From IMG/VR virus record IMGVR_UViG_3300044796_000657, positions 310,001 through 374,000 of that record: a stretch of DNA of 64,000 nucleotides; one strand, given 5' to 3'. The notes beneath the pieces are model-generated. The model had not been told where the DNA came from, made no database searches, and saw nothing but the letters and a program-made list of their open reading frames with translations. Shown here in pieces: positions 12,427-61,586 of the stretch; the stretch's first letter is position 1, and each line of letters begins with the position of its first letter. A program made the translations under genes and the position numbers.

Positions 12427-12561
12427 ATGATGAACTTCAAAGAATGGTTAAAAATTAATGAAATGGCTGGAGTTGCCACCATTATAAATCCAAAGAAGGA
12501 TTGCAAAAATCCCGATTTTCAGGTATGGGGTGCGGTTTGTAAAAAGTCTAAGAAGAAGTAG
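12427..12561 (+). CDS. 44-aa protein with a capsid-targeting-like N-terminus (not in the ORF track)
   Basis: Manual translation MMNFKEWLKINEMAGVATIINPKKDCKNPDFQVWGAVCKKSKKK*, preceded by CTAAATA. Confidence 0.65.
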   Translation: MMNFKEWLKINEMAGVATIINPKKDCKNPDFQVWGAVCKKSKKK

Positions 12562-12922
12562 GTAATCTTTCCATAATCGCATGACCTAACGGATTTCCCC
12601 GGCCAATAATGCGGAATCCAAGATTCAGATAAAAGTTTCCAAGTCGATTAAGGTTTGTTCGTTTGTCGAGTGGCGATGCTAAAAGTTTGATTCTTAATTT
12701 TCTTGCATCTGCCTCTGCTACCAATGCTTTCATGGCAGCAAGAGCTAATCCCTGATTTCTTTTCTTTCCTGAAACACGAAGAGAAGCAAGGTCAATAAGG
12801 TCGCCTGACACTTGATAAAGTAACCTTGCACCATTAATGTTTTTCTGATGATGCTTTTCAGCGAAATCTTCATCAGAAAATGGCAGGTTCTCGGACTCTA
12901 AATAGTATTGCTTGAAGTTCAT
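12548..12922 (-). CDS. GNAT-family acetyltransferase with a capsid-targeting-like N-terminus
   Basis: LRVSGKKRNQGLALAAM (acetyl-CoA loop) and FYLNLGF; N-terminus MNFKQYYLE. Confidence 0.75.
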   Translation of the reverse strand: MNFKQYYLESENLPFSDEDFAEKHHQKNINGARLLYQVSGDLIDLASLRVSGKKRNQGLALAAMKALVAEADARKLRIKLLASPLDKRTNLNRLGNFYLNLGFRIIGRGNPLGHAIMERLPTSS

Positions 12923-13581
12923 TGGTCTGAAATTTGAAACTCCTTCTTTTTAGCGGCAATCCAAACCTCCGTAATAATGATAAATTTTATACCCCGCTTC
13001 TTACAGTACTCGTTGCAATAACTCCATTTAGATTCATTTATCGCCAAGTTTGTTTGATTGACCGGCTTGATTTCCCACACTTCTTTTCTTCCATCGGTAA
13101 AGTGAACACGCAAGTCAGGAAGATAAGTATGTCTCTCACCATCAAAGAAATACTCAATTTCCAGCGGCTCTACTTCGTAACCAATTACATCATCCATCTT
13201 ATCCAGAATGCGATAAACATCTAATTCCCATCCCGAATTGTAATGGAGCTTTCTGCGATTTTTTGGCGAAACGTGCCACCCTTCCTTGAATGATATTTTC
13301 TTTTTCTTACGATTAGGATCTTTGGGATCACGCCAGATCAATGATTTCATTTGACAAGTTTTAGGCAACACTTCTTGTGGATGTATTGATTTGAAATGTG
13401 CTCTGACATCTCTAACGGGAGCACAGCAACGAGCCAAGGGGCATACGACGTATTCTCGCCCCTCTTCGTGGTTATTGCGTATATGTTCTTTGAAACTGGC
13501 CCAATCGGGCTGCAGGACGCCACAGACGAAGCATTGAAATTGTCTCTTGCCGCCGTGGTTATTGTTAAATGGTAATGGCAT
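12919..13581 (-). CDS. TnsA-like / T4 gp4-like PD-(D/E)XK endonuclease with two N-terminal C2H2 zinc fingers
   Basis: CFVC-x12-HIRNNH and CPLARC...HFKSIH fingers; nuclease motifs YNSGWE, YEVEPLEIEY, YLPD and EIKP. Confidence 0.75.
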   Translation of the reverse strand: MPLPFNNNHGGKRQFQCFVCGVLQPDWASFKEHIRNNHEEGREYVVCPLARCCAPVRDVRAHFKSIHPQEVLPKTCQMKSLIWRDPKDPNRKKKKISFKEGWHVSPKNRRKLHYNSGWELDVYRILDKMDDVIGYEVEPLEIEYFFDGERHTYLPDLRVHFTDGRKEVWEIKPVNQTNLAINESKWSYCNEYCKKRGIKFIIITEVWIAAKKKEFQISDQ

Positions 13582-13689
13582 ATAAAAATCTTTTTTAATT
13601 TGACTATAATTGGCATTCCTTATTATGCCAATTGTTTAATCACCTGTGTCAGAAATCCCATCCCATTAAGACAAAGCAATCTTCGAGCA

Positions 13690-14196
13690 TTATGAACACG
13701 TATCGCCAAAAAGTTCATGCGTTTCTTTAACGAAATCTGAGAACATTTTGACTAAGTGAATATTAACAGCTTCTAGCAATTTCAATGAACTATCAAGAGT
13801 GCCTAAAAATACATAAGATCCTCTTTCACATTGAGTACAAGAAATTTCACTCATATAATGGTTAATGTCTTTAACTGCTTTCAAGAAATCGTCGTTATAA
13901 AACATTAACTCTTTTTCAACTTGTAAAATGGCATTTTTTGTACTTACCCATTTAGCATGACAAGGGGCCGTTGAGTAAAAGGTTGCCTTGGTGTCACACT
14001 TAGTTTTCCAATCCGCTATTTGTTCTGATAATTCATGAAATTCTTTTGATATAACATCATTCAATCTATTTAGCTGATCTTTTTTGAATTGATGACAAGA
14101 TGGTGCGAATGTCAAATCATCACAAGGCGTGTGATCTTTCACCAAGGGTGTAATAGCTTCGATTTTGGCTGGTGCTATATTGGATATATTGCTCAT
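13690..14196 (-). CDS. Hypothetical helical protein
   Basis: 168-aa ORF. Confidence 0.55.
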   Translation of the reverse strand: MSNISNIAPAKIEAITPLVKDHTPCDDLTFAPSCHQFKKDQLNRLNDVISKEFHELSEQIADWKTKCDTKATFYSTAPCHAKWVSTKNAILQVEKELMFYNDDFLKAVKDINHYMSEISCTQCERGSYVFLGTLDSSLKLLEAVNIHLVKMFSDFVKETHELFGDTCS

Positions 14197-14238
14197 GTAA
14201 TCCTTTTTGTAACAATGACTTAAATATTATATATTCCA

Positions 14239-15000
14239 TTAATCGTATTTTATAGACTTGACCTCTAACATGAGGTTTTGATTGAAAACCCCTATTACAA
14301 TTTTGTCGGCAATAAACTTGTAATGGTTGCCGGTTTCAACCAATGTGGTAAAATTAACACCATCTGGTGAAATGGAAATTTTGCGATAATTATCATCATC
14401 TTCCAATTGAACAAACTTGGCAGCAGACATGGACATTTGTTTTGTTTTCATTTCAAATCCTTTGAAATGAACTTGATCTTGCCAACGTGCGACAAAGGCA
14501 TTGGGTTTTATACCGAAATCCCGTAATCCAAGAGTCATTGCTTTGCCGCAATTTGATCCAAATCCAAAGTAAATGGCCCCGGTACGATTTTCAGGAGCAA
14601 ATTCATCAGCTATCAAACTTGATTCCCATTGAAACGTCACCTTGTATGGTGTTATTGGTATTTCACGATAGAGAAACACTGGATGTGGCGTATAAGATGA
14701 CCGACAAACGACATTTAACGATCCTTCATTTTCGCTACAAACGGAATCTTCTTTGTTGTACGACCATTCCCATCCTTGTGCTGGTACATCAAACATCTTG
14801 CCATATTCGTTGTATCTTGTCCAAGATGTGCCATCGTCATAGAGTTTGAAGGGTCTATCCTCACAGATAAACAATCTCCCGGCATTTCCTGCTTCTGGAC
14901 AATCTTCATATTTACCTGCGATGATTGGTGAAGGGACGCATTCTTTGACTAATCCATAGACCATATCTTTGACGGCACATTTTGAACACTTGCATTTCAT
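14239..15000 (-). CDS. Hypothetical protein (Cys-rich N-terminus, beta-rich and possibly lectin-like C-terminus)
   Basis: 253-aa ORF rich in aromatic residues and beta-strand patterns. Confidence 0.5.
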   Translation of the reverse strand: MKCKCSKCAVKDMVYGLVKECVPSPIIAGKYEDCPEAGNAGRLFICEDRPFKLYDDGTSWTRYNEYGKMFDVPAQGWEWSYNKEDSVCSENEGSLNVVCRSSYTPHPVFLYREIPITPYKVTFQWESSLIADEFAPENRTGAIYFGFGSNCGKAMTLGLRDFGIKPNAFVARWQDQVHFKGFEMKTKQMSMSAAKFVQLEDDDNYRKISISPDGVNFTTLVETGNHYKFIADKIVIGVFNQNLMLEVKSIKYD

Positions 15001-15035
15001 GTTAATTTCCTTTTGTAATATTATGTATTTTTATC

Positions 15036-15064
15036 TTGCAAATGATTTTCAATTATGGTAGACT
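15036..15064 (+). promoter_or_regulatory. Sigma70-type promoter of pncB
   Basis: TTGCAA, a 17-nt spacer and TAGACT with an extended TG; TTATGGTAGACT is shared with the pncA promoter. Confidence 0.6.
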
Positions 15065-15088
15065 ATTTCCATCCTTCCGGAGTAGATC

Positions 15089-16285
15089 ATGGCCATTAAA
15101 AGCTTGCTGGACAACGACATCTATAAAATTTTCATGCAATATGCCGTACTCAAAGAGTTTCCGGGTACGCATGTCCGTATGGCTTTCATGAACCGTCGTA
15201 AAACCGATGTTCTCTCAAAATCGCTTTTGAAATCTTTAAGGGAAGTCGTAAATTCCGTGAAAGGCATGAAAGCCGATTCATGGGAATTGTCACACATCCA
15301 TAAACACTACCCATTCCTGCCAAATTGGTATATGGATTGGCTTAGTGAGTTTGCCCCAAATCCCGCCCACGTTAATATAACGGAAAACGGTGAAATTACC
15401 GTTGAAGGCCCGTGGGAACAAGCCATGTGGTGGGAAATTCCCATCCTCTACACAATCAGCGAATTGTTCTGCGGGGAAATCGATGCTGAAATAGGACACA
15501 TTCCTCGTAGCGAAATAGTCAAATCCACATTGACCAAAATGGAAATTCTGAAAGGTCACTACAGTCGCTATGGCGAGGCAATCGAACACGATCCTTGTCA
15601 ATACGTTCAATTCGGCTGTCGTCGTCGTCGCTCATACGATATTGAGGATGAAGTTGTTCGTACAATGAAAAAGGCCGATCATCCGAATATGCTCGGTATT
15701 AGCAACATCCACTTGGCAGCGAAATACGATATTAGGCCGGTGGGCACAATGGCTCATGAGTTCGTTATGGGTGTCAGTGCATTGAAAAGCCTGCGATATG
15801 CCAACCGTGAGGCAATGGAGACATGGCTTCGTGTTTTCAAGGGCGAATTGGATATTTTCCTGCCCGATACTTTTGGAACGAATGTGTTCCTGAAAGACTA
15901 CACTCGCCAATTTGCTCAAGCATTCAATGCGACTCGACAAGATAGCGGGTCAGCGTATGAATACGGCGAAAAACTCATTAACCATTACAAAACAGTAAAA
16001 CTTGATCCAAAAACCAAATCGATCACATTCAGTGATGGGTTAACTGCTACAGAATCAACGAACATCCAGCAACACTTCTACAATCGAATTAAAAGAGCTT
16101 ACGGCATCGGCACACACTTCACTAACGATTTCATGAACAGACCTGCCATGAATATCGTGATGAAGTTAACACATGTCAACGGAATTCCGGTCGTCAAGCT
16201 CAGCGACGTTCCCGGCAAAGCCTGTGGCGATCCCAATGCTCTCAAAGCAGCAAAGTGGGTGTTTCTCGGCGAACCTTTAGTATAA
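15089..16285 (+). CDS. pncB: Nicotinate phosphoribosyltransferase
   Basis: SLLDNDIYK, FGCRRR, GTMAHEF (phospho-His), LPDTF, RQDSG, FSDGL, GIGTHFTND and KLSDVPGK. Confidence 0.93.
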   Translation: MAIKSLLDNDIYKIFMQYAVLKEFPGTHVRMAFMNRRKTDVLSKSLLKSLREVVNSVKGMKADSWELSHIHKHYPFLPNWYMDWLSEFAPNPAHVNITENGEITVEGPWEQAMWWEIPILYTISELFCGEIDAEIGHIPRSEIVKSTLTKMEILKGHYSRYGEAIEHDPCQYVQFGCRRRRSYDIEDEVVRTMKKADHPNMLGISNIHLAAKYDIRPVGTMAHEFVMGVSALKSLRYANREAMETWLRVFKGELDIFLPDTFGTNVFLKDYTRQFAQAFNATRQDSGSAYEYGEKLINHYKTVKLDPKTKSITFSDGLTATESTNIQQHFYNRIKRAYGIGTHFTNDFMNRPAMNIVMKLTHVNGIPVVKLSDVPGKACGDPNALKAAKWVFLGEPLV

Positions 16286-16294
16286 GGATTTACG

Positions 16295-16783
16295 ATGAAG
16301 TACGTTGAATGTCCCGACTTGTTCATTCCTGAATCCATCGATGATTACAAGAAAACCTTGTTTCTCGGTGGGGGAATTTCAGGTGTGGGCAATTGGCAAG
16401 CGGAGATGGTGAGATTGTTGCAGGATACGGAGTTAATCCTCATCAATCCCCGGCGAACCAACTTCGACGTTAATAATACAAAAATGACTGTGGAACAAAT
16501 CCAGTGGGAATATCACCACTTGAATTTGTCTCATGCTCGTATGTTCTGGTTCCCACCGGAAACTCTGTGTCCGATCACCTTATTTGAATTAGGGAGATTC
16601 TCCGTACAGAGCAATCCCCTATTCGTAGGGTGTGATCCCAAATACGCACGGTCGCTTGATCTCGAAGAGCAAATGAAGCATGTCCGAAGATCGGAAGTCA
16701 TGTTTGATTTGGAGATTCTCGCACGACAGATTATTTTGTATGCGAAACATATGTCAAGCAACGGGCGATACTACGCCACTTAA
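16295..16783 (+). CDS. Nucleoside 2-deoxyribosyltransferase-like protein
   Basis: LFLGGGI, NWQ, LINPRR, QIQWE, FWFP and CPITLFELG. Confidence 0.8.
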   Translation: MKYVECPDLFIPESIDDYKKTLFLGGGISGVGNWQAEMVRLLQDTELILINPRRTNFDVNNTKMTVEQIQWEYHHLNLSHARMFWFPPETLCPITLFELGRFSVQSNPLFVGCDPKYARSLDLEEQMKHVRRSEVMFDLEILARQIILYAKHMSSNGRYYAT

Positions 16784-17121
16784 CCACTACTACTAGAAGA
16801 AGACGAACTTGATGAATGAATAACTTTGTGTGTTGGAAAATTGCTCACTCTTAACGGTACGCCCGGCAGCAATCCAATTGGTGGAGGCACGAAGTCATCA
16901 AAATCAGGATGCCGCAAATTCGGTAAAGGAATTGGAATTCGTCTCGTTCCCCACGGCCAAAGTAATGGTAAAAAATACCTCATTCCCGGTGGTGGCACCA
17001 TTGGCGGTGGTGCTTGCGGTTGTGGTTGTGGTTGCGGTTGTTCGATTGGTGGCGGTGGTGGTAATTGCATATTATTCCTTTTCTTGTGGTGTTTAACTAC
17101 TACTGCTGCTACTACTATCAC
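16780..17121 (-). CDS. Pro-rich protein with a C-terminal poly-Ser tail (paralogue 2)
   Basis: PPPPPIEQPQPQPQPQ...PTHKVIHSSSSSSSSSG; the start is probably the internal MQLPPP. Confidence 0.55.
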   Translation of the reverse strand: MIVVAAVVVKHHKKRNNMQLPPPPPIEQPQPQPQPQAPPPMVPPPGMRYFLPLLWPWGTRRIPIPLPNLRHPDFDDFVPPPIGLLPGVPLRVSNFPTHKVIHSSSSSSSSSSG

Positions 17122-17874: not shown

Positions 17875-18000
17875 GCTCTATTTAGCCCCTCATGTCACAA
17901 TCATTTCAGATTGATTGTCATTCTTGTTTCGTTATAATAACACCCAGAATAATAGAATTTTGACTATCTGAAATAGGCGAAGCTTTTAATTTACGGAGTA

Positions 18001-19346: not shown

Positions 19347-20752
19347 ATGTATCTGACATCATTAATAAGTTCAAAATTCAAAATGCCAAAACGAGACTGA
19401 GAATAGCAGTTATTGGTGATACGCTCGTTGATGAATACCGTTACGGCCAAGTCAACCGGATTTCGCCCGAATTTCCCGTTCCGATATTAACTTCCGAGTC
19501 AGACGCCAAGGAATCTTGTCCCGGTGGCGCTGCGAATGTATGCCATCAAATGACACACATGAACGCCGAAGTCTTTCTCGTAGGCTTTGTGGACAATGTC
19601 ACACGTAAATTGTACGGTCAGCAAACCTTCAATATTGACTACTGCGTTGATTTGCCAAGCGGCTTTGTACCAATCAAAGTTCGATTTTATGAAGGCGACT
19701 TTCCTCTCCTGCGATGGGATATTGAAAGTCCTAACTATGGCGAAAAAGATTTAAGTGAATTGAGACGAAAAATTCTCATTAATTTTGAATCTCTCATCAA
19801 AGAGGGATTGAGTGCGGTCATTATTAGTGATTATAATAAAGGCATCTTTGACGAAGCTACCGCTCGTTCTCTCATGCAATTATGTACTTATTACCGCATT
19901 CCTACTATCGTTGATCCCAAGAAACCACCAGTGAGCAAATGGTTCGGGGCTACAGTCATTAAGCCAAATGCGGCTGAAGCCAAGACGCTAACTGGTGAAT
20001 CTACTATTTCATCTCAATTGAGTAAATTATGTGAAAATGCTCATACGAGTATGATCACCCAAGGCGGCGACGGTGTTATTTGCCAAATTGGAAAAGAAAT
20101 TTTTGAATACATGTCCCCCGTACCACGATCTAAGGAGGTGAACAGTGTTATCGGGGCGGGGGACTGTTTTATAGCAATGTTAACTCTTGGGATGTCGCAC
20201 GGTATGACAACTCAAGAAGCTGTAGCATTGGCATTTGAAGCCGGTGCTGTTTACGTTAAAGCAAGACATAATAAACCAATTCATCTTAATGAAATACTCG
20301 CAAGAGTTGATGTTGAAGGCTCTCGTATCGTCAAAGCCGAAGAGTTAAACTTTAACAAAAACGAACGTATTGTTTTCACAAATGGTTGTTTTGACGTTAT
20401 TCATGCTGGTCACTTGGATACTTTGAAATTTGCCAAATGTCAAGGTGATCGATTGATTGTCGGTGTTAATTCGGATGCTTCTGTCAAGCGACTTAAGGGT
20501 GATAAGCGACCCATTTATGGACAAGATGAACGTGCTAGATTTTTAGCGTCAATGTATTTCGTAGATCATGTTGTGATTTTTGATGAAGATACACCAGCCG
20601 AATTGATTAATAAAATTCAGCCACACATTGTTGTTAAGGGCGGCGATTACTCTATTACGGATGTTGTTGCCGGTAATGCCAAAGTTGTTTTGTCGCCTCT
20701 CAGAAAAGGATACTCTTCAACTAATACAATTAATAAACTATCTGACGACTAA
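19343..20752 (+). CDS. hldE: Bifunctional heptose-7-phosphate kinase / heptose-1-phosphate adenylyltransferase
   Basis: PfkB half: GDTLVDEY, RISPEFPVP, GGAANV, SDYNKG and GAGD. C-terminal half: FTNGCFDVIHAGH, GVNSD, EDTP and VKGGDY. Confidence 0.93.
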   Translation: MNVSDIINKFKIQNAKTRLRIAVIGDTLVDEYRYGQVNRISPEFPVPILTSESDAKESCPGGAANVCHQMTHMNAEVFLVGFVDNVTRKLYGQQTFNIDYCVDLPSGFVPIKVRFYEGDFPLLRWDIESPNYGEKDLSELRRKILINFESLIKEGLSAVIISDYNKGIFDEATARSLMQLCTYYRIPTIVDPKKPPVSKWFGATVIKPNAAEAKTLTGESTISSQLSKLCENAHTSMITQGGDGVICQIGKEIFEYMSPVPRSKEVNSVIGAGDCFIAMLTLGMSHGMTTQEAVALAFEAGAVYVKARHNKPIHLNEILARVDVEGSRIVKAEELNFNKNERIVFTNGCFDVIHAGHLDTLKFAKCQGDRLIVGVNSDASVKRLKGDKRPIYGQDERARFLASMYFVDHVVIFDEDTPAELINKIQPHIVVKGGDYSITDVVAGNAKVVLSPLRKGYSSTNTINKLSDD

Positions 20753-20759
20753 ATAAGGT

Positions 20760-21044
20760 ATGTTCAAAAAATTCAAAGAATTCGTTTCACTAAAAGAGGC
20801 AATGGCTCCTCAAATGGGCCAACCGGGTCAAATGACTCCACAGACGCCAAATCCTGCCGCTAAAATGAACGTTCAAAACACTTTGAAGCAGGCGATGAAT
20901 GTGCCGCCTCCGACTGGTATCAATCAATCAATATATAAGAACAAGTTGATGGCAGCTATGAAAATGTCTCAAACGAGCAATGTTCAAACACCTCAACAAG
21001 CGATAGATTTAGTTAATATTCAGCAGCGGGCGGCTCAGGCGTAA
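20760..21044 (+). CDS. Gln/Pro/Met-rich small protein with a capsid-targeting-like N-terminus
   Basis: N-terminus MFKKFKEFVSLKE; CTAAATA at 20749-20755. Confidence 0.65.
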   Translation: MFKKFKEFVSLKEAMAPQMGQPGQMTPQTPNPAAKMNVQNTLKQAMNVPPPTGINQSIYKNKLMAAMKMSQTSNVQTPQQAIDLVNIQQRAAQA

Positions 21045-22025: not shown

Positions 22026-22030
22026 AAAAC

Positions 22031-22500: not shown

Positions 22501-24165
22501 TTACCAACCAAATTCCTGTAAAAGTTTATGATGTGGTCTTTGTGTGTCGAACATCATTCTTGGCAACAAGTCAACATCTGGATCTAGATTGGCCAACAAA
22601 TCGCCCGTTTCAATACCAGCTTCCAATTCTTTCCACAATGCCTTAACGTCGTCACCCGAAAAACTCTTGTGAATGATATTAGCATCAGGCGTAGCACCGA
22701 TTGGCATTTCCCGGTTCAAAACGTCAGAGATGTACAATGCTATACTGAGGCAAATCACCAAGTCGTCATGCTTGTTCTTTTGTGCTTCGGCTCTTTGCTT
22801 TTCTTGATTGTAAATGAATGTTAACAATTCCCGAATAATACGAACGCTTCGAATCTTGACAAGACGATTCAACATACACGTTTGTAATGCTTCCATACAA
22901 ACTGGACGCAATACTTTATTCATGTTAACGCCGGGACGATCTCTAGTTGCCCCTTGCGTAAAGTAAAGGTTGTCATAACTCAATGAGTGTTCAAGTCGTT
23001 CACAAACAGCTTGGCCCGGTCCCATTGAGTTTTCCACAATAATCAAAGCATTGTTATAAAGTTTTCCCACATGCGCCAAAACTTGACTGAACTTATATGT
23101 CGGAATTGTCTTGGAATAAAATTCAGCCACTTGCGTTAACGTGGAAATGTCCATGACAATAAAGGCGCAGTTATCGCCTTCTTGTCCAACACCCATAGCG
23201 GCATCGGCAGTAATGAGATATTCACGACCGGATTTAGGCATTTCCCAAACCCACATCGCACCGGGTTCGTATTTTGCATTCGGAAGTTCGTCTTCTTTGA
23301 AGCTTTCTTCGGGGATGATGTCCCATTCACCCATCATCTTTTTAATTGGATTAGAGCATTGTTTTTCAAATTCTTTGATAACTTCACCGGGAATGTAAGT
23401 ATCACCGGAGCCGAGGAATGAACCTTCGTATTCCTGTGCGAAGCCTTTTTCGCCGATGTTAGCTCGTGTTCGCTTTTCCCATTCGGCATTGTTATAGTCG
23501 GGGTGTTCATGCCAGTCAATATGTACAACAAAAAACTGACTTCTCTTGTCAATAGCCTTTTGGTATTGTTCGTAGTACCAACCACCGACGCCACCGATAC
23601 CGTTAACCGTGGAGATGATAATAGCATTACCACCGGTTGAGAGCGTAGGATACATGCTCTTCCAGTGTTCTTCCATACCTTGAACGAACGCCGCTTCATC
23701 GATAATTAGATAAGTTAAAGCACGGGAACGAGCAGCGGCAGGAGTATAGAACCACATAACCGAACGAGTTTCAGCAAACTCTTTTTCGTGGTCGTTATCG
23801 TTGTTCATTTCCGGACGAAGCCATTCCGGAAGTTCATTCTTGGCATTAGCTACCGTTTTACCTACAGCTTTAGCTTCACGGTCAGTTTTAGAAGCAATGA
23901 GAATACGCTGATCGGTGTAGAAAATGCACTTCCATAACATCCACATAGATGTTACAGTGGTCAGACCGGCTTGACGGAATTTCTTAACAATGCTAAACTG
24001 ATTAGATTCAAAGTCAGAGATAACTCGATTTTGGAAGTCGTATAGAACGAATGGTACCAAACCCTTTTTCGGGTGGGTAATCTGTAAGTACTTCTCAGAA
24101 AAGTACTTGAAACTATTTCGACATCTGATAAACTCTCTAAGTTGCTCGTCATTTAATTGGCCCAT
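22501..24165 (-). CDS. terL: Terminase large subunit (T4 gp17-like)
   Basis: Walker A region KFRQAGLTT, Walker B IIDEAAF, ISTVNG, QEYEGSF, nuclease motif ITAD and HDDLV. Confidence 0.95.
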   Translation of the reverse strand: MGQLNDEQLREFIRCRNSFKYFSEKYLQITHPKKGLVPFVLYDFQNRVISDFESNQFSIVKKFRQAGLTTVTSMWMLWKCIFYTDQRILIASKTDREAKAVGKTVANAKNELPEWLRPEMNNDNDHEKEFAETRSVMWFYTPAAARSRALTYLIIDEAAFVQGMEEHWKSMYPTLSTGGNAIIISTVNGIGGVGGWYYEQYQKAIDKRSQFFVVHIDWHEHPDYNNAEWEKRTRANIGEKGFAQEYEGSFLGSGDTYIPGEVIKEFEKQCSNPIKKMMGEWDIIPEESFKEDELPNAKYEPGAMWVWEMPKSGREYLITADAAMGVGQEGDNCAFIVMDISTLTQVAEFYSKTIPTYKFSQVLAHVGKLYNNALIIVENSMGPGQAVCERLEHSLSYDNLYFTQGATRDRPGVNMNKVLRPVCMEALQTCMLNRLVKIRSVRIIRELLTFIYNQEKQRAEAQKNKHDDLVICLSIALYISDVLNREMPIGATPDANIIHKSFSGDDVKALWKELEAGIETGDLLANLDPDVDLLPRMMFDTQRPHHKLLQEFGW

Positions 24166-32122: not shown

Positions 32123-32150
32123 TGATTTTTGTATTAAGAATCTACATACT

Positions 32151-32954
32151 ATGATGGAAAGACGCAAATTCGATAATTGGGTTAAATCTCGCCAAAATAT
32201 AGTAGGCGAAGGCTTCATGGATCGTATATTCGGCAGAAAGCAACAGCCGCAATCGCACGAACCACCTGAACCGGAAGAACCGTCACATATTTATGCGCAC
32301 CCAACGGTTGAAAAATATCACCGTGAAGTCCTAGATCATCTTCTTTTGAATCAGCCACTCGAAATCATTAATGGTTCTGGTCAAAAGACCGGCGATTATC
32401 ATGGTAAACTCCCGCCGGAAATTGACAAGGCTCTCCGAAGATTTGTGGCAAGTCACACTTTGGGCGGCGAAAAGTCATTCCTCAGAGTTAACCAGCACGA
32501 CGCAATTTTGATCCTCAACTATATGGATCGATTGCGGGTGCCGGGCGAAGACTCACCACTCACCGACCGCTTTGGCATTACAAATCCTGTTTCATTCAGT
32601 CAATGGATGGAAACCCACGTTCCAGTATCCTTGAACGTACAAAGACAAATGGGCTTTGCACAAGCATCCGGTAACTATGTGCCGCCACGTGATAATGTCG
32701 GAGCGGGTTCTTTACGTGATCCAAGAATCAAGAAACTTGTTGACGCTTCGTTGAAAGTAATTAACGGTGTCAGCGGCAAGATGGAAACATCAAGCCGTAG
32801 AATTACAAAAGACATTATTGATGGTGTCAAAGAAATGCGTGGGGCACTAGCTGCCATGAACATTATTGATGATGCTCAACCGACCACCAACACCCCTCCT
32901 CCTGATCCTTACGTCGTTGGCAAGGGCCGTCCAAAACCCAAACAAAAGCCTTGA
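32151..32954 (+). CDS. Hypothetical late protein, possible internal head protein
   Basis: CTACATA at 32142-32148 just before ATG; N-terminus MMERRKFDNWVKS. Confidence 0.6.
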   Translation: MMERRKFDNWVKSRQNIVGEGFMDRIFGRKQQPQSHEPPEPEEPSHIYAHPTVEKYHREVLDHLLLNQPLEIINGSGQKTGDYHGKLPPEIDKALRRFVASHTLGGEKSFLRVNQHDAILILNYMDRLRVPGEDSPLTDRFGITNPVSFSQWMETHVPVSLNVQRQMGFAQASGNYVPPRDNVGAGSLRDPRIKKLVDASLKVINGVSGKMETSSRRITKDIIDGVKEMRGALAAMNIIDDAQPTTNTPPPDPYVVGKGRPKPKQKP

Positions 32955-33604: not shown

Positions 33605-33790
33605 ATGGCTAAAAAGACTCAAACCAAACAAGAGCAAATTTCGCAAGAAGAGCAGTATATCGCATTCCTTCAAAAGCGATTAGCTTCTGAGCATTACAAG
33701 GAAGTTACTTCAAAGGAAGACTACGCCAAGGAAAAGGCAAAGTATGAAAAGGCAAAGTTCAAATTGAAGATGTTGAAGGAACAGCGTTAA
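33605..33790 (+). CDS. Small basic hypothetical protein
   Basis: 61-aa ORF directly downstream of pncA. Confidence 0.6.
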   Translation: MAKKTQTKQEQISQEEQYIAFLQKRLASEHYKEVTSKEDYAKEKAKYEKAKFKLKMLKEQR

Positions 33791-34286
33791 TAGAACCTAC
33801 GATGTTTTCGATAATCTGCCGGGATTTCTGAAACAGTGAAATCAAACCCGAATGAAATTTCTTTGAAGATATTAACATCATCTTTTGAATTTCTTCATAA
33901 GCCAACCAGTCAATATGGGAAGTTTCCCAACTATGTCCGGAATGGGGACTGAAAGTGAATTCTGTTGGCACAACACCAATGAAATTGAAATACTTGAAGT
34001 TTCCAGAACTGAAAACATAAGCGGGAGTTAACTGGATTGCCCCTTCGTAACCCGTCTCTTCTTTCATTTCTTCTTTGGCACTTTCGGCGGGTTGCATTCC
34101 TCTTTGGATTGCGCCTCCAAGAGTGCCGTAGCAATTACCCATATGAACCGATCCGGAACGCCACGCAAGACAAATCCGTTTCGTACTTGAACATATCGGA
34201 AGAATGCCGCTGGCCCCACCACCTTCACCAGCCCAAAAACCGTCGTTATCGTAGTGAGATTCTATCCACATCTTAAATCTCTTCAT
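33759..34286 (-). CDS. NUDIX hydrolase with a capsid-targeting-like N-terminus
   Basis: NUDIX box GGAIQRGMQPAESAKEEMKEETGY; N-terminus MKRFKMWIES. Confidence 0.8.
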   Translation of the reverse strand: MKRFKMWIESHYDNDGFWAGEGGGASGILPICSSTKRICLAWRSGSVHMGNCYGTLGGAIQRGMQPAESAKEEMKEETGYEGAIQLTPAYVFSSGNFKYFNFIGVVPTEFTFSPHSGHSWETSHIDWLAYEEIQKMMLISSKKFHSGLISLFQKSRQIIENIVGSINAVPSTSSI

Positions 34287-34516
34287 TAGACCGTTCTCAC
34301 AACCTGTTTTCTTCCGATCTGTGGCAATGCTGGCCCGCCATAGGTTGGGAATGCCGAAGTCGTTGGTTCGGGCCGCATTGGTTTAGGTATACTTTTATCA
34401 CTCAGTCCACCAGATTTCAAGTCCGGTCTACGATCCTGTGAAGGCGTTGCTTTGATTGGCCCATTATCTACAATAGGCCCACCAAATTCCATCCATGTTC
34501 TAAAACTGCTTAGCAT
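34286..34516 (-). CDS. Small protein with a capsid-targeting-like N-terminus
   Basis: Internal start MLSSFRTWME at 34516, preceded by ATATATA. Confidence 0.6.
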   Translation of the reverse strand: MLSSFRTWMEFGGPIVDNGPIKATPSQDRRPDLKSGGLSDKSIPKPMRPEPTTSAFPTYGGPALPQIGRKQVVRTV

Positions 34517-34554
34517 ATCTTTATATATCCTCTCATTATCGTATACATATTTAT

Positions 34555-45249: not shown

Positions 45250-45789
45250 TTACCCAATGGCGTTTTCCGCCGCAATCAATTGTCTATACGATGTTAAGTT
45301 ATCACACCATTTTATAAATTTTTCGTATGACATTTTGCCTTTAGCCCAATTGCATGTTTTGCAACACGGCAAAGAATTTTCGGTGGTATATCCTTGACCG
45401 GGTACTTTTTGATCTATCCCTAACCAATGATAATATCCCCAATTGGTAATGTTAGTTTTGTATAAACGATCAGGATTTGTACCGCAATAATGACAATTGC
45501 TAGAAGTTATGTCTTTGAATTCTTTCAAAGTCAAAGACATATAATTTCTCTTGCTATAAATATTAAATAATGCTTCAAGGCCACTTTGACCTTTGGGTTT
45601 ATTTTTACATTTTTTGCATACTGTATCTCTTTTTATATGACTTCTAGTTGATATTTTTATTGCATCGCAATTTTTACAATGAATTTTCCATACACTGGTC
45701 TTGCGATTAAATTCCATTTGTTTGATTTCAATAAATTCATCAACTATCCAATTTTTTAAATTATCAATCGTTTGTATGAATTTACTCAT
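45250..45789 (-). mobile_element. Free-standing HNH homing endonuclease gene
   Basis: CHYCG...GIDQKVPGQGYTTENSLPCCKTCNWAKG; ATGA overlap with the actin-like gene stop. Confidence 0.8.
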
Positions 45790-46787
45790 TGTAAAGCATT
45801 CTCTGCTGCCATTAAGCATCCTTTGCCGACACTAAATAAGTGATCTTCGGGACGCTTAACTTCACCAACAGGAATCGACCAATCCGCTTCTTTGATACCT
45901 TGTTTGAACAATTCAACAAAGCCGGGAGGACTCGCAGTACCACCACCCAAAATAACATCTAAAGGCTGACCGGGCACCGCTTTGGCACCAGCATCAACAA
46001 TCGCCTTCTTGATTGCGCTCGTCGTCTTTTGGATCAAGATTTCATATTGACTCTTAATTGCTCTTTCAACTAATGAAGTCGGCGTTTTGGTCAAATCGAT
46101 CTTCGTCTTTTCTTGATTGATGACTGTCGGACTTTCGCCGCACGCCTTTGCTGCCATCTTGTCAATCCAGTCGCCACTATTCACAAGCGACATTTGAAAT
46201 ACCGGTTGAGCAAAAATGGAATAACACAAGTTAACCATACCAGCACCGAAACTGATACCAACACCGGTATGCATCTTATTACCTAATTCGGCAAAAACCA
46301 ATGCTAAGGCTTCGTTGATTGGAAACGCTTGAAGTCTCTTATTGTTGACGTTGTACGCCTTGAAAATAGAGAGCAAGACGTTACTGTGAAAGTCCGCATC
46401 CGTTTCGGTGTTGATAGCGTTGGCAGGAACCGAATAGTAAAGAATTTCTTTGTCTTTTTCAATTTCGCCGATCAGAGAGTGAATCATGATCTTGAGAATT
46501 TCAAAAGCATTACGTTCTTTGGGGTTCAAACACCCATCAGCCATAGGACGCTTCAGATTTAAAAGCGGAATAGTATAAGCCATATCGATAGCCGGTTGAC
46601 CGACTACGTAAGCCACTTTATCACGCTCAATCATCTTAACTTTATCTTTGAGCATATTGAACATGAAACGATTTTCCAACGGCAATTCAATGAATGCATT
46701 TACCGTCTTCTTGCTCTTGATTTCATTCGTTTCATTACGCTTGCTACAAATAAGGTTGTAGGTACCCGCATCAAATCCGATTGCCAT
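45786..46787 (-). CDS. Actin-fold ATPase (MreB/ParM/MamK-like)
   Basis: Phosphate-1 IGFDAGT, INEALA, phosphate-2 GISFGAG, adenosine motif ILGGGT and SVGKG. Confidence 0.88.
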   Translation of the reverse strand: MAIGFDAGTYNLICSKRNETNEIKSKKTVNAFIELPLENRFMFNMLKDKVKMIERDKVAYVVGQPAIDMAYTIPLLNLKRPMADGCLNPKERNAFEILKIMIHSLIGEIEKDKEILYYSVPANAINTETDADFHSNVLLSIFKAYNVNNKRLQAFPINEALALVFAELGNKMHTGVGISFGAGMVNLCYSIFAQPVFQMSLVNSGDWIDKMAAKACGESPTVINQEKTKIDLTKTPTSLVERAIKSQYEILIQKTTSAIKKAIVDAGAKAVPGQPLDVILGGGTASPPGFVELFKQGIKEADWSIPVGEVKRPEDHLFSVGKGCLMAAENALQ

Positions 46788-51998: not shown

Positions 51999-52018
51999 AT
52001 TTAACGTCTAAATAAAAC

Positions 52019-52270
52019 ATGCTAGGATTCAAATTGTGGATAGAAGCGAAAGCCGCTCCTCTGATTATCAGTAGACGCAATGAATATGACGATTTTCCGT
52101 ACATCGTTGTTGCGTTCCCTAGCGGTGCCCGTTGGAAATATATTTTCCCTAATCAGCACACGATGGAAGAATATTTGTATCGATACAGTCGGAACGTTGG
52201 CAGATTAGTTTCCAAGATTAAAGACGACGATACTGTTAAACAAGAGCAATTACCTCTTCCACAGAGTTAA
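52019..52270 (+). CDS. Small protein with a capsid-targeting-like N-terminus
   Basis: N-terminus MLGFKLWIEA; CTAAATA at 52008-52014. Confidence 0.65.
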   Translation: MLGFKLWIEAKAAPLIISRRNEYDDFPYIVVAFPSGARWKYIFPNQHTMEEYLYRYSRNVGRLVSKIKDDDTVKQEQLPLPQS

Positions 52271-52975: not shown

Positions 52976-52990
52976 CTGTTTAAATACAGT

Positions 52991-56746: not shown

Positions 56747-56762
56747 ACTCTATGAAAGTAAG

Positions 56763-57749
56763 TTAAATCATATTCGGCGAACCACCGAGAAAATGTCTAA
56801 CTCTTTGCCCTCTCATAAGACCGTCATATATCTCCTTATTGATCATATCCTGTAGCTGATATGGAGTTCCTCGCCAATCTTCGTGCGGGCCAATGAAATC
56901 ACTATCTTTCATTGGTGGCAACGCAAGCAATGGCGGACGACTCAATCCAAGGGTTTTTTCGCCAAATGCTAAATCATCGATGTGTTCACCGAGTATTGAA
57001 ATTTCTGCCGTAAACTTTTCCCGCATCCGTGGTTTACTATTAAAGATTTTCGGTTGCGGCAAATTGGAAAGAGGATCGGCATCAACACCCAATAACCGAC
57101 ATCGTAATATATTCCATTCGTCCAACGGCATTTCGTTGACGTTGATACGGTAATCATTTGTGAAAAGGTCTAATGTTGGTGCAACATCGGGAGCACAATT
57201 ATGAATTAGATCGTAAGTTAAACAAATCGCTACTCCCATCCAAAAGTTGGGATTGTTCAACGGAAACACTTTTTGGTTACGAGTGATCTTATCGAGTATG
57301 GTTGGCGGGCTGCGGTGATACGTTTTAACATATCGACATTGCCCGTGCAATAAATTCCGATAGTGATGACTTAGATCACGGATACTATGAAATTGGTGTT
57401 GGGCGAGATGTTCACTTTTGCCAAAGATTGCCCAAGGAATTACGCTGACGCTACGACTTCCCGCAACAAAAAGTGTGCGATATGACAAAAAGCCGTTAAC
57501 TCTATCAAACATATCACATACCGTTTCACCCCATTCACACCAATGCTGCCGACGGCGGAAGCGGGAATCTTCGGGGTACGTATCGATATGCGCAAAGTAT
57601 TTTTTCAAGAAAAAGGTTTTCTTGAGAGCGCCTTTCGGTATAGCGAACTCCAGAACGTGATATTCGGTATCATCGACTACTTCGATGCTTGATGAGACAT
57701 TGCCGTTATGGAAGGCTTCTTTTGGTGTCATAATGTTGCTATTTTGCAA
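56763..57749 (-). CDS. Hypothetical protein
   Basis: 328-aa ORF with no recognised motif. Confidence 0.55.
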   Translation of the reverse strand: MQNSNIMTPKEAFHNGNVSSSIEVVDDTEYHVLEFAIPKGALKKTFFLKKYFAHIDTYPEDSRFRRRQHWCEWGETVCDMFDRVNGFLSYRTLFVAGSRSVSVIPWAIFGKSEHLAQHQFHSIRDLSHHYRNLLHGQCRYVKTYHRSPPTILDKITRNQKVFPLNNPNFWMGVAICLTYDLIHNCAPDVAPTLDLFTNDYRINVNEMPLDEWNILRCRLLGVDADPLSNLPQPKIFNSKPRMREKFTAEISILGEHIDDLAFGEKTLGLSRPPLLALPPMKDSDFIGPHEDWRGTPYQLQDMINKEIYDGLMRGQRVRHFLGGSPNMI

Positions 57750-57769
57750 ATTTAAGGTATACTAAACCC

Positions 57770-58654
57770 ATGAGCAAATTTCTAATTACCGGTGCTAGTG
57801 GTTTCATAGGATCAAATCTAGTAAATAACTTACTAGACATGGGGCATGAAGTCACATGCATCGGAAGAATAGACGAACAACCAGTTCGATGTCTATCATA
57901 CACTTTCCATGACATTAATTGGAAGAGCATTGGGCAGATTGATGGTATATTTCATCAAGCGGCAATCACCAATACGCTTCATCCCAACAAAACAGATTTT
58001 AACTTAATAAACTTTGAATACACGAAGTCACTGTTTGAGGCGGCTAAGCATAATGTCAAATCTATTGTGTACGCAAGTTCCTGTGGCGTTTACGGCGATG
58101 TTCCCACCCCATTTAGGGAAGATGGCCCCACCAAGCCACTCAATCTGTACAGTCAATCTAAATTGGATCTTGATCAATGGGCAATGAAATGGTCTCTTGC
58201 AAATCGTGTTAAGGTCGTTGGCCTCAGATATAGCAACGTGTACGGTGCTGGCGAATCACACAAGGGCAAGAGTGCCAGTATGATTTACCAATTGGCCAAA
58301 AGTATCAGTCGGGGAATTCGTCCTAGATTATTTGAACATGGCGAACAAAAGAGAGATTTCGTTTACATTGAAGATGTCATGACAGCAAATCGTTTGGCTT
58401 TAAGTGCTCCGTCCGGTGTCTACAATGTTGGCTCTGGATCAGCTACCTCGTTCAATGATATTGTTAATCATCTAAATGCCACCTTAAGCACAGATGTTAA
58501 ACCTGAATACTTCCCCAATCCACATCAATCAGTTTACCAAAATTCTACATTGTGCGATTTGAGTTTATCAAAAGATCGTTTGTGCTATTTCCCTCTGTAC
58601 GACATTGCTTCTGGCATCAAAGCATATCACCAATCGGGAAAGCTAGTCTCTTAA
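57770..58654 (+). CDS. hldD: ADP-L-glycero-D-manno-heptose 6-epimerase-like extended SDR
   Basis: GASGFIG, FHQAA, YASSCGVYG, YSQSK, RYSNVYGAGESHKGKSAS, RDFVYIED. Confidence 0.82.
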   Translation: MSKFLITGASGFIGSNLVNNLLDMGHEVTCIGRIDEQPVRCLSYTFHDINWKSIGQIDGIFHQAAITNTLHPNKTDFNLINFEYTKSLFEAAKHNVKSIVYASSCGVYGDVPTPFREDGPTKPLNLYSQSKLDLDQWAMKWSLANRVKVVGLRYSNVYGAGESHKGKSASMIYQLAKSISRGIRPRLFEHGEQKRDFVYIEDVMTANRLALSAPSGVYNVGSGSATSFNDIVNHLNATLSTDVKPEYFPNPHQSVYQNSTLCDLSLSKDRLCYFPLYDIASGIKAYHQSGKLVS

Positions 58655-59497
58655 GCCGCTGGTCGTATTAATAGCAACCGGCAAGCCCATAATTTTGACG
58701 CCGAATTTGTCCGGATGAACCGGCAGAGTACCTTGCGACACTTCTCTTTTTATCCAAATCGGCAATATGTCACCCGGTAACATTGTCCCAATTTCCAATG
58801 GTTCACGACGAGCATTGGTGTCAAACACAACGCCAGTTGGTGGATTGTTTGATATTCCTATGTTCGGAGCAGTGCTGTTAATTGGCCCGCCATAGCCGAT
58901 ACGTGTAATCCGAACATTCAAACCTTGATCATCAACTACTCTAAGCAATTCTTGCGCTCGCCCTTTTGCGGTACCCGAAAACGTAATAATAAAATCATAT
59001 GAATCGCTTGTTCTTTGGCCCAAACAAGTCACGCCTGTCAAATTCCCCAGAGAGTTGATTAGAGCCGCAATCCGTTGAGACATAAATGCGGTGTCTGGTA
59101 CCCATAGAATATCCCGTGTTTGGGTAGTTTTTGTACCTTGTGCAGAAGATTCTGTATAAGCCAATCGGAATGAACCACCAACTGGACTTCCGGGTATTGT
59201 AATGGCTTGTACATCATTGGTAAAAGCAAATCCTAATTCAATATCAGCACCTTTATCTGCTTCTTTGGTCAAAAATACACTGGCATTTTTGAGTTTTTCA
59301 ATAGAAGACAAGAGTTTAACATAGATACAACGGTAATCAATTGAACCATCAATTGTTTGCTCTCTGGTTACGTCATCGAATAAATTGTTAAATATTTTTT
59401 TGACTGGCGAGCGAGATGGTTCACCGCCAATAGATAACAATGGATCTGAATTGTGCTGTCCGCCGGATAGCATAAACTCAATGTCTTTTTCAGTCAT
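58643..59497 (-). CDS. Probable virion structural protein
   Basis: LSGG..NSDP..SIGG...NNLFDDV...DYRCIYV pattern seen in phage structural modules; GTATATA upstream. Confidence 0.55.
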   Translation of the reverse strand: MTEKDIEFMLSGGQHNSDPLLSIGGEPSRSPVKKIFNNLFDDVTREQTIDGSIDYRCIYVKLLSSIEKLKNASVFLTKEADKGADIELGFAFTNDVQAITIPGSPVGGSFRLAYTESSAQGTKTTQTRDILWVPDTAFMSQRIAALINSLGNLTGVTCLGQRTSDSYDFIITFSGTAKGRAQELLRVVDDQGLNVRITRIGYGGPINSTAPNIGISNNPPTGVVFDTNARREPLEIGTMLPGDILPIWIKREVSQGTLPVHPDKFGVKIMGLPVAINTTSGLRD

Positions 59498-59598
59498 TTG
59501 GTCTATATACCTTTATAGAAATTTGTAGCCTTGTGTATATATGTCATATCGTTGCAAGTGCCGATTGTACATTGGGTTGACTAGGAGAATACAGAAAC

Positions 59599-60615
59599 AT
59601 GATGAATTATCAAACATACAAACTCCTTAACGAAACTTTGGGTTTGTCGGCTCTTGGTGTTAAGTCCCCCCACAACTTGGGAATTGGCGCAGCACCATCG
59701 GGCTGGAGTGAAGCGGGTATGCTGCCTCCAGTGGGTGGGGCACTTAGCGGTGGCAATCCTTTTGGCGGCGTTGGTGGTGGCGGTGAAGCCCCTGCTCCCG
59801 GTGCCGATGATATGGGCGGCGATGACATGAATGCTGATCCTGATGCCGGTGACGATCAAGGTGATCAAGGTGATAAAGATCCAGCCGATATGTCTCACGA
59901 AGAATTGGTTGCTGCTTTAACTGATTTGGGACACGAAGAAGACGAACTTGAAGGCAAAGAAGACGACGAACTCCGTGATATGCTCGTCCAAGCCCAAGCC
60001 GAACAAGGCGATGATAGTGGCGACGGCGAAACCGATGCCGATCTGGATGCCGATCACGGCGACGATATGGGTGATGCTTCAGCGGGTAGTGGTGATGACA
60101 ATCTCGTACCTAATAAGAAGCCAGTTAGCCCATTCATGAAGGCTTTTATGAAGAAAGAAGCCGCTGAAGCTAAGGCCAATGACAAAGAAGACAAAAAGGG
60201 CAAAGACGACGGCAAGCCTACTTTCATGATGAAGAAAAAGTGCGGTTCCGGCATGGATGATAAGAAGATGGTTATTGGCAGCAAGAACTGCAAAGGGTGC
60301 AAAGACAATATGAAGAAAGAAAATACCGCTGGTGATTACGCTCGTCCAAAGAGTTACGATGGCAGCGAAGCGGCCTTCAAGAAGAGCATTCGTGAACAAC
60401 TCGCTGCTACCAATGTTAATCAAAAATTCAACGATGGTATGCGAGATTTCAAAAAGGAAGATTTGCTGATTATGCCAAATCCCCTTGAAACCCCTGCTAT
60501 GTCTCAACCCGGCGAAGCAGGTTTTGCACCACAGGGCAAGATTGGTGACTTAGGATTTACTGCGGAAGCCGTTGCCAGTATGATGAAGCGAATTGAAAAA
60601 TTGGAAAAGAAATAA
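59599..60615 (+). CDS. Acidic low-complexity late protein, prohead core/scaffold-like
   Basis: N-terminus MMNYQTYKLLNE; Asp/Gly-rich middle and Lys-rich segment; AGGAG Shine-Dalgarno; terminator downstream. Confidence 0.55.
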   Translation: MMNYQTYKLLNETLGLSALGVKSPHNLGIGAAPSGWSEAGMLPPVGGALSGGNPFGGVGGGGEAPAPGADDMGGDDMNADPDAGDDQGDQGDKDPADMSHEELVAALTDLGHEEDELEGKEDDELRDMLVQAQAEQGDDSGDGETDADLDADHGDDMGDASAGSGDDNLVPNKKPVSPFMKAFMKKEAAEAKANDKEDKKGKDDGKPTFMMKKKCGSGMDDKKMVIGSKNCKGCKDNMKKENTAGDYARPKSYDGSEAAFKKSIREQLAATNVNQKFNDGMRDFKKEDLLIMPNPLETPAMSQPGEAGFAPQGKIGDLGFTAEAVASMMKRIEKLEKK

Positions 60616-60621
60616 CTCATC

Positions 60622-60650
60622 AAAAAAAGCCCGCATTTGCGGGCTTTTTT
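60622..60650 (+). terminator. Intrinsic terminator
   Basis: A7-GCCCGC-ATTT-GCGGGC-T6. Confidence 0.85.
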
Positions 60651-60699
60651 ATTTGGGTTCACAATATTATACTACTGTGCAAGTTAATACAAGGAAAAT

Positions 60700-60807
60700 A
60701 TGGACAAGACGAGATATTTGAATTTTTGGCTCTTGAGAGCTGAAATAAGGAGACGATTAGTAGAAGAAAAAACCAAAGAAGTTAAAGTGGTCTACAAAAA
60801 GTCTTGA
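60700..60807 (+). CDS. 35-aa basic microprotein (not in the ORF track)
   Basis: AAGGA Shine-Dalgarno; MDKTRYLNFWLLRAEIRRRLVEEKTKEVKVVYKKS*; flanked by two terminators. Confidence 0.5.
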   Translation: MDKTRYLNFWLLRAEIRRRLVEEKTKEVKVVYKKS

Positions 60808-60810
60808 TAC

Positions 60811-60835
60811 AAGCCCCGCTAAGCGGGGCTTTTTT
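60811..60835 (+). terminator. Intrinsic terminator
   Basis: GCCCCGC-TAA-GCGGGGC-T6. Confidence 0.8.
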
Positions 60836-61499
60836 ATTTGCATTTCCATTGATTACGGCAAACAATCTCTTTCCAATCTTCTTTTTTCTTTGGTAATTTT
60901 TTTTCAAGAAGCCAAGAGGGATCAAAAATAGGTGTCTTTTTCAAGAGCTCTAATGTCCAAGTTTGAGTTTCTTGATAGGGCAACTTGGATGTTTCGTGGA
61001 TTGATCCCGGCCCCACAAAGAGGCCACCGTCGCCTCGAATGTCCAAGTTATATTTAACGCCGTCTTTGACTATTTTTTGAACATTACGAATACTTCTGTT
61101 CATTGGATGCCGATAAATGTAATGTGTACCGTGTCCGGAACCGCTGACCTGCATGAGTGGTGTAGGTGGACATGCTTTTTGTACGACTTGCTCAGCGGCC
61201 TCATCGTCGGCATCTACAACGATAATACCAGAAATTTTGCCTGTGATAATGGCATAATTCAAACCGGCATACCTTTGATACCAATAAACAATTTGGTCTA
61301 AGCTGGCTCGTTCTGATTGATAGGGCTTCCATCGTTCTACGGTACACCCTTTGTTGGATGCTCCCTTAACGAGTGGCGGTGATATGGAGAAGCCGAGATT
61401 GCATAATCGCAAAGCATTTTCAAAGATCAGTCTATGATTCATAAATATGATATGGGTTCTTTCAAAAAATGGCTTGAGTCTGCTGATCAACAACGACAA
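60834..61499 (-). CDS. Stand-alone Prim-Pol (bifunctional primase/polymerase N-terminal) domain protein
   Basis: NYAIITG, IIVVDAD, SGSGHGTHYIY and LDIRGDGGLFVGPGSIH. Confidence 0.8.
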   Translation of the reverse strand: MSLLISRLKPFFERTHIIFMNHRLIFENALRLCNLGFSISPPLVKGASNKGCTVERWKPYQSERASLDQIVYWYQRYAGLNYAIITGKISGIIVVDADDEAAEQVVQKACPPTPLMQVSGSGHGTHYIYRHPMNRSIRNVQKIVKDGVKYNLDIRGDGGLFVGPGSIHETSKLPYQETQTWTLELLKKTPIFDPSWLLEKKLPKKKEDWKEIVCRNQWKCK

Positions 61500-61586
61500 A
61501 AAGATAAGGCTTCCCTCGCTCTGAAAAAACCAGAAGTGAGAGATAGCCTAATATCTCGTTACGGTGGATTTTTGAAGAAAACTTAA
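61452..61586 (+). CDS. 44-aa protein with a capsid-targeting-like N-terminus (not in the ORF track)
   Basis: MGSFKKWLESADQQRQKDKASLALKKPEVRDSLISRYGGFLKKT*; ATAAATA at 61441-61447. Confidence 0.6.
   Translation: MGSFKKWLESADQQRQKDKASLALKKPEVRDSLISRYGGFLKKT

Follow-up and report, generated by a model that had tools for sequence, protein, structure and literature searches.

A candidate capsid-targeting peptide of the T4 internal-protein type on unrelated proteins of a huge peat phage

The internal proteins (IPs) of bacteriophage T4 carry a short capsid-targeting sequence (CTS) at their N-termini; according to the T4 sequence record, MKTYQEFIAE opens IPII and IPIII, and MKTFKEF opens IPI. A review of work on T4 reports that the ten N-terminal residues of IPIII are enough for packaging, and that within them targeting depends mainly on residues 4 and 7 and processing on residues 8 and 10 (PMC9026906; see also PMC3012670). 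Here we describe an N-terminal peptide, hereafter the tag, that is shared by otherwise unrelated proteins of an uncultivated phage of ~0.6 Mb, the DNA of which derives from a peat metagenome. The tag was noticed in a stretch of 64,000 nucleotides (the window) that covers positions 310,001-374,000 of the 430,229-bp IMG/VR record IMGVR_UViG_3300044796_000657 (GC 0.43). We put at roughly 70% the probability that this peptide acts as a capsid-targeting propeptide like those of the T4 internal proteins. It probably marks a set of proteins that travel inside the head and reach the host together with the DNA.

The tag has the layout of the T4 CTS in IPI, IPII and IPIII, namely aromatic residues at positions i and i+3, a hydrophobic residue at i+4, and then Glu. 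In both cases a peptide of ~10 residues stands at the N-terminus of otherwise unrelated, mostly small and basic proteins, and a gp21 protease, a scaffold and a gp23 capsid protein are encoded by the same phage. On the other hand, the consensus is F-[KR]-x-W-L-E here and Y-Q-E-F-I-A-E in T4, with the Glu mostly one residue earlier here. At least 22-28 members, many of them enzymes, are found here, compared with three in T4, and the tag genes of the peat phage often start 4 nt past a promoter-like box without a Shine-Dalgarno sequence. Unlike T4, the ~0.6-Mb peat phage is uncultivated, and T4 genes for replication or late transcription were not detected in its record.

The packaging of an enzyme with an immediate action on the host has a precedent in T4 Alt, an ADP-ribosyltransferase (ART) which the phage packages and injects (PMC9026906; PMC5512222). 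Alt and the ARTs described below are alike in that each carries a short propeptide at the N-terminus and belongs to a phage with a T4-type head system; they differ in that Alt belongs to the R-S-E clade, whereas the peat-phage ARTs are of the H-Y-[DE] ART-PolyVal type (PF18760). The Alt propeptide is not known to resemble the internal proteins' targeting sequence. Among the protein-modifying domains of polyvalent proteins, the most frequent are ART, peptidase, kinase and GNAT; such proteins are predicted to be co-injected with the DNA (Iyer et al., 2017; PMC5512222). The peat-phage set has ART-PolyVal securely in common with these proteins, and peptidase and GNAT domains more weakly, together with a predicted delivery with the DNA. 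The difference is that its domains occur as separate small proteins, each with its own tag, and not in one giant polypeptide.

In phiKZ-like giant phages, many head-internal proteins are processed after Glu by a gp21-related protease (gp245 in SPN3US). These phages form a separate lineage, and we know of no common short N-terminal targeting peptide described for their ejection or inner-body proteins. The PeSL cassettes of T4-type phages provide another point of comparison: a hairpin and a promoter box stand directly before small accessory genes, as they do at 12427 and 52019 of the window, although PeSLs carry early promoters and encode no shared peptide. Shuffling of promoter cassettes is documented for T4-type phages (PMC2839356, PMC4122927). 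The hairpin and box of the peat phage are a plausible route for the acquisition of plug-in genes.

A shared N-terminus on unrelated proteins

The strict tag pattern, M-x(1-3)-F-[KR]-x-[WFY]-hydrophobic-E, stands at the start of 18 genes out of 758 called heuristically, where its frequency at internal positions would predict 0.55 (Poisson P 1.8e-21). Shuffled N-termini, proposed as a check in the preliminary description of the window, give an expectation of 0.44 strict-pattern starts, with a maximum of 4 in 2000 shuffles. A six-frame search of the whole 430-kb record with the expression M-x(1-3)-F-[KR]-x-[WFY]-x(0-4)-E returned 23 matches, almost all of them at most 21 codons past an upstream stop, and in a six-frame scan with a position-specific scoring matrix 17 of the 19 top matches lay 1-4 codons downstream of a start codon. 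A looser rule (aromatic, polar, any residue, aromatic, hydrophobic) is enriched too, with 21 observed and 2.9 expected. Altogether the record holds 22 strict members, two with GTG starts included, seven of which are inside the window; at least six additional tag genes lie directly past the record end. The preliminary description had quoted nine N-termini and had claimed a common pattern on at least seven unrelated open reading frames. All nine are present in the sequence at the positions and on the strands it gave, and the family has turned out to be larger and genome-wide.

On the forward strand of the window, the gene at 12427-12561 encodes 44 amino acids (aa) starting with MMNFKEWLKINE (isoelectric point, pI, 9.7), and its exact product is on record. 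It is a free-standing unit, with a TAAATA box (12417-12422, +) 4 nt 5' of the ATG and a GC hairpin plus T-run (~12385-12410) immediately 5' of the box. A hairpin, a T-run and a TAAATA box (52009-52014) also precede the gene at 52019-52270 (+; 83 aa, MLGFKLWIE). The gene at 20760-21044 (+), behind a TAAATA box at 20750-20755, encodes a Q/P/M-rich protein of 94 aa (MFKKFKEFVSLKE, pI 10.2), and that at 61452-61586 (+), behind a TAAATA box at 61442-61447, encodes 44 aa (MGSFKKWLE, pI 10.1); an alternative ATG at 61434 is the start recorded for the latter in a public protein collection. On the reverse strand, an operon opens at 34286-34516 with the gene of a 76-aa protein (MLSSFRTWME, pI 10.3), the start of which follows a TATATA box (34522-34527) and falls within a longer frame initiated by TTG. 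Its neighbor at 33759-34286 (-) encodes a NUDIX hydrolase of 175 aa (MKRFKMWIE), assigned by Pfam and by its predicted fold. Neither the exact 34516 product nor the full-length NUDIX protein was found in the public collection, where the latter is called from Met6. The seventh member (12548-12922, -; 124 aa, MNFKQYYLE) is the second gene of an operon, has no box, and matches GNAT weakly, its best score (Acetyltransf_7, 18.9 bits) being under the cut-off of 27. A TA[AT]ATA box thus stands 4-5 nt 5' of the ATG in five of the seven window members, the remaining two being second operon genes, and the small members are basic (pI 9-10.3).

Two further genes, already listed as looser cases in the preliminary description, are indeed loose variants, and neither has a Pfam match. 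The gene at 59599-60615 (+) encodes a very acidic (pI 4.5), low-complexity protein of 338 aa (MMNYQTYKLLNE), possibly a head-core or internal protein. The other (32151-32954, +; 267 aa, MMERRKFDNWV) stands behind a TACATA box at 32143-32148.

The tag is a detachable appendage on unrelated folds. No pairwise similarity was detected among members by BLASTP at E 1e-3, and a YHG(T) motif after the tag is common to three of them, all ART-like. The NUDIX domain of 33759-34286 (Pfam 31.2 bits, cut-off 21.1) has an ordinary fold, matched by PDB NUDIX structures at E ~1e-7; within its NUDIX box E-x-x-E-E is conserved, but the Arg is not. In the AlphaFold model of this protein (mean pLDDT 88.8), the tag, residues 1-9, scores below 50 and lies outside the predicted fold, the domain scoring ~90. 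For the 83-aa protein encoded at 52019, the predicted fold comprises residues 10-82, and structural matches begin at residue 10. Some homologues of the NUDIX protein carry a variant of the tag (MRSFKEFLE, MKFSIWLE, MRFKTWLKE, MKPFNQWVRE, MGDFSKWLKVRE); others are without the whole extension and start straight at the conserved ASGILP core. One homologue, P0003, is a fusion of tag, NUDIX and ART-like parts.

Head genes, cleavage sites and the TAAATA-type box

Searches for head genes inside the 430-kb record yielded a gp23-family protein and the terminase, and nothing else; portal, protease and scaffold were not found with Pfam (PF03420, PF07230), T4 and Flavobacterium-phage proteins, hidden Markov models built from four or seven gp21 members, or PHROGs applied to 30 large proteins. 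An exact sequence look-up of window proteins revealed that the record is the initial ~430 kb of a 614,480-bp JGI contig (offset 239). On this contig, a T4-type head module is situated 11-19 kb past the record end, and four of its genes are homologous to genes of LR756511.1, an uncultured 595-kb phage that is the closest relative in the phage collection. In the coordinates used here, L109 and L111 are parts of the contig past the record end, L002 is a stretch of the record (L002:4065 is genome position 298065) and L011 is LR756511.1. The module contains a 636-aa protein in the portal position, homologous to LR756511.1, and a gp21 prohead protease of the Peptidase_S77 family (PF03420; L111:4294-4944), which matches T4 gp21 at E 1.4e-22. 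Between the protease and capsid genes lies the gene of an acidic 322-aa scaffold (L111:5234-6202); the protein is homologous to its LR756511.1 counterpart, and homology to T4 gp22 itself was not detected. The 477-aa gp23 capsid protein (PF07068; L111:6239-7672) matches T4 gp23 at E 1.6e-35. IMG/VR labels the record a provirus that is 97% complete, and the shortening of the 614-kb contig is presumably due to provirus trimming. Both the trimming and the completeness estimate look wrong, because the trimmed part opens with phage genes that include the portal-protease-scaffold-capsid module.

Within the window, the T4-type large terminase (22501-24165, -) is the anchor of synteny with LR756511.1; the two terminases are 41.6% identical, and the synteny extends across 21-51 kb. 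The window also encodes a Volactin-family, actin-like protein (PF25216, 193 bits; 45786-46787, -), which is strongly conserved in LR756511.1 (E 6e-129). The gp23-family protein of the window (2147-3097, +; 316 aa) was considered as the main capsid protein and rejected; it is a paralogue, since the 477-aa gp23 capsid gene sits in the module past the record end. It is without the ~160-residue insertion domain and, remote from the head module, may be a vertex (gp24-like) protein. Near it, two neighboring paralogous proteins of ~530 aa with N-terminal membrane segments (phrog_200, 'lipoprotein') are encoded at 3953-7207 (+), a GC-rich island (0.52, compared with 0.40-0.43 in the surroundings).

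The capsid protein reads ...RLINE/QSTDTGDISQFKR right before the conserved N-arm, near the position at which T4 gp23 is cut (Glu65). Among other tags or box genes, similar end sites are RVLNE/S in the gp23 paralogue, VLNE/S in gene 185755 and LLNE/T at 59599; the capsid protein of the relative has LFNE/I. At the ends of the tags, Glu is near-universal; [LI]-x-E occurs in ~7 of 24 members (KINE, SLKE, RLKE, LLNE, WIAE, NIEE), the others ending in aromatic-[LIM]-E. One tagged protein of 56 aa (genome 298065-298235, -; L002:4065-4235) aligns to residues 48-75 of the capsid protein with 46% identity (E 4e-5), and the alignment sets its IEE/T in register with the capsid LINE/Q. This protein copies the presumed capsid cleavage site together with the N-arm (TGDIxxFxR...YP); it might serve as a decoy or regulate maturation.

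The end of the TA[AT]ATA box lies exactly 4 nt 5' of the ATG in 20 genes (15 with TAAATA, 5 with TATATA). Within 2-8 nt upstream it is found in 39 genes, at least 14 of which have the strict tag and ~6 a loose one. In front of the protease, scaffold and capsid genes the same box (CATAAATA, CATATATAA, TCTAAATAAATA) occurs at a distance of 35-45 nt upstream and is followed in all three by a Shine-Dalgarno sequence; the genes with the box 4 nt before the ATG (window 12417-12426, 20750-20759, 52009-52018, 61442-61451, and ~20 others) have none. This arrangement suggests a class of leaderless transcripts. Six further tag genes occupy the stretch between the record end and the head module. The preliminary description had placed most members after a late-promoter box. 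The box itself stands, and it is termed a 'late promoter' solely on the strength of analogy and of its location ahead of head genes, because no homologue of T4 gp55 or gp45 was found in the 430-kb record, nor were homologues of gp44, gp43, gp46 and gp47.

Payload proteins and spread in other huge phages

A Pfam search of the members identified an ART-PolyVal protein (PF18760, H-Y-[DE] type) at 51.5 bits, plus a fragment and a third protein with YHGT. A Peptidase_C39_2 domain scored 67.5 bits. Matches to GNAT (two members) and to Amidoligase_2 are weak, and two proteins have the HExxH motif alone. No significant match came from sequence searches of the PDB with the kinase-like, ART-like and HExxH members, and those assignments rest on short motifs. 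The claim of the preliminary description that enzymes are among the tagged proteins stands for the NUDIX protein, which exceeds its Pfam cut-off, and holds more weakly for the GNAT protein, which stays below. According to Pfam, the members are single-domain proteins and do not combine several effector domains in one polypeptide as polyvalent proteins do, the lone two-domain fusion being the homologue P0003. Of the payload domains, ART-PolyVal and, less securely, peptidase and GNAT fall in classes known or predicted as virion-delivered effectors.

Some neighboring observations touch on these proteins. The tagged protein with the weak Amidoligase_2 match (L002:4741-6105) is encoded upstream of a COOH-NH2 ligase of the phiEco32-like type in the window (62327-63289, -; 44.7 bits). 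Genes of NAD metabolism are found alongside the NAD-consuming payloads: nicotinamide phosphoribosyltransferase is matched weakly at 15089-16285 of the window, and an NAD synthase is encoded at L109:201-2192. Gene 306382 of the peat phage starts with MLTWQDFLKIRE and has no Pfam match.

The tag is not confined to this phage. A scan of IMG/VR for TAAATA-N4-ATG-N{3,9}-FKxWxE gave 46 matches, 45 of them in frame and 1 out of frame, the chance of being in frame being 3 in 7. Many of these cassettes are on contigs of 200-511 kb, and an ART-like motif, (V/L)YHG, occurs in many of their payloads. Four of nine cassette contigs, the sole complete one among them, contain PF03420; the terminase relatives in IMG/VR also carry tag genes, and PF03420 is found in three of five. 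A looser tag pattern was compared with a backwards control in five huge phages, with counts of 11/1, 10/1, 5/0, 5/0 and 7/1. For LR756511.1, the strict FKxWxE DNA pattern found nothing, whereas the looser pattern found seven. This phage has PF03420 and genes with box plus tag, among them the gene of a 1076-aa protein and that of a NADAR-domain protein (70.7 bits; L011:34611-35108), which starts with MLTWTEFLEAR after a TAAATA box.

Selection on the tag can be read from its codons, which vary from member to member. In 41 unique IMG/VR cassettes, Phe is encoded by TTC in 21 and by TTT in 20, and the unconstrained NTN position is Leu in 31, by way of five different Leu codons. The synonymous codons are free to vary, and therefore selection acts on the tag peptide. 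The contigs that keep the peptide span a GC content of 0.24 to 0.56.

Interpretation, rival readings and meaning

The reading of the tag as a capsid-targeting sequence, put forward in the preliminary description, is supported by the match to T4, by the modularity of the peptide, by the genes for gp21, scaffold and gp23, by the common box, by the [LI]-x-E register and by the classes of payload. We infer the binding, cleavage, packaging, ejection and payload roles of the tagged proteins from these features. In the proposed mechanism, the tagged proteins would be made together with the head proteins, from genes with the same TAAATA-type box, and the tag would bind the scaffolding core of the prohead. 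The gp21-family protease of the phage would then cut after the tag Glu, and the mature proteins would be retained in the head, to pass into the host along with the DNA. The mature set would comprise small basic proteins, ADP-ribosyltransferases, a NUDIX hydrolase, a papain-like peptidase and probable acetyltransferases.

With its small size, its N-terminal position, its disorder in the model and its modularity, the tag also resembles degrons and docking peptides. The tag might thus be a signal unrelated to the capsid, such as a ClpXP- or Lon-type degron, a handle for a chaperone or hub, or an address for another phage-built structure. The helix-turn-helix member, a DNA-binding protein, need not be packaged, and the Volactin-family protein hints at cell-biological complexity. 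We regard such a signal as unlikely, because the layout equals the mapped T4 determinants residue for residue, with T4 IPI reading MKTFKEF, and because the tag genes have their box in common with head genes and cluster beside the head module. One tag also ends in register with the presumed capsid cleavage site, and we know of no degron with the tag consensus. Less probable still is that the nucleic acid is the conserved thing, in the form of a mobile promoter-plus-start cassette or an initiation element of leaderless mRNA, with a functionless peptide. The exact phasing of the TA[AT]ATA box 4 nt before the ATG, where no Shine-Dalgarno sequence is present, unlike in the head genes, would suit this explanation, as would the cassette shuffling cited above for T4-type phages. 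However, the synonymous positions vary freely, including the five Leu codons at the hydrophobic position, and the spacing from ATG to motif varies from 1 to 3 codons. The peptide is moreover retained by boxless members (the operon-internal NUDIX and GNAT genes, 210232 and 428779) and in contigs from GC 0.24 to 0.56. Chance, or residual paralogy in which duplicated genes retain the N-terminus alone, is hardly credible. Some members are related, as the YHG(T) after the tag in three ART-like proteins indicates, but the counts are ~30-fold over expectation, no pair is similar at E 1e-3, the folds are distinct (NUDIX, C39 peptidase, ART, helix-turn-helix), and NUDIX homologues exist with and without the tag. 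Paralogy, chance and conservation at the nucleotide level were accordingly rejected on the enrichment, the negative BLASTP comparison and the free synonymous codons.

Several points weigh against the capsid-targeting interpretation itself. More than 25 different packaged proteins are many for a T4-type head. The residue at P3 is aromatic in most members, because the Glu usually comes one residue earlier (W-L-E) than in T4, and not the L/I preferred by T4 gp21; a clean [LI]-x-E is found in ~7 of 24. Among the payloads, one member is a helix-turn-helix protein by Pfam search, and the GNAT, amidoligase and HExxH calls are weak. The late sigma factor gp55 and the clamp gp45 are absent from the matches in the 430-kb record. 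A peat metatranscriptome from another study covers 92% of L002:4000-9600 in assembled contigs at a flat depth of ~10; this could be transcription or carry-over of DNA and holds no information on transcript ends. Finally, the phage is uncultivated, and the content of its virions is predicted from sequence.

If the tag works as in T4, it would make it possible to list, from sequence only, which proteins huge uncultivated phages send into the host along with their DNA. This delivery coincides with the moment at which host defences act and at which counter-defence must already be present. The list is rich in NAD and ADP-ribose chemistry (ARTs, NUDIX, and NADAR in a relative) and also includes peptidases, which makes its members candidates for anti-defence and host takeover. 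More tentatively, and at somewhat less than even odds, the tag may be a readable packaging code across many huge environmental phages, with ~30 injected proteins in this one, among them enzymes of NAD/ADP-ribose chemistry, proteases and a protein that mimics the capsid N-arm. Under such a code, the peptide, often within a cassette of box and leaderless start, would perhaps let almost any protein be plugged into the head. What is new is probably a T4 capsid-targeting principle with a larger, enzyme-rich membership that is widespread in huge environmental phages. If this is true, the protein-packaging tool of T4 would be extended to other phages, and the T4 solution would be ancient and widespread rather than a speciality of the T-even phages.

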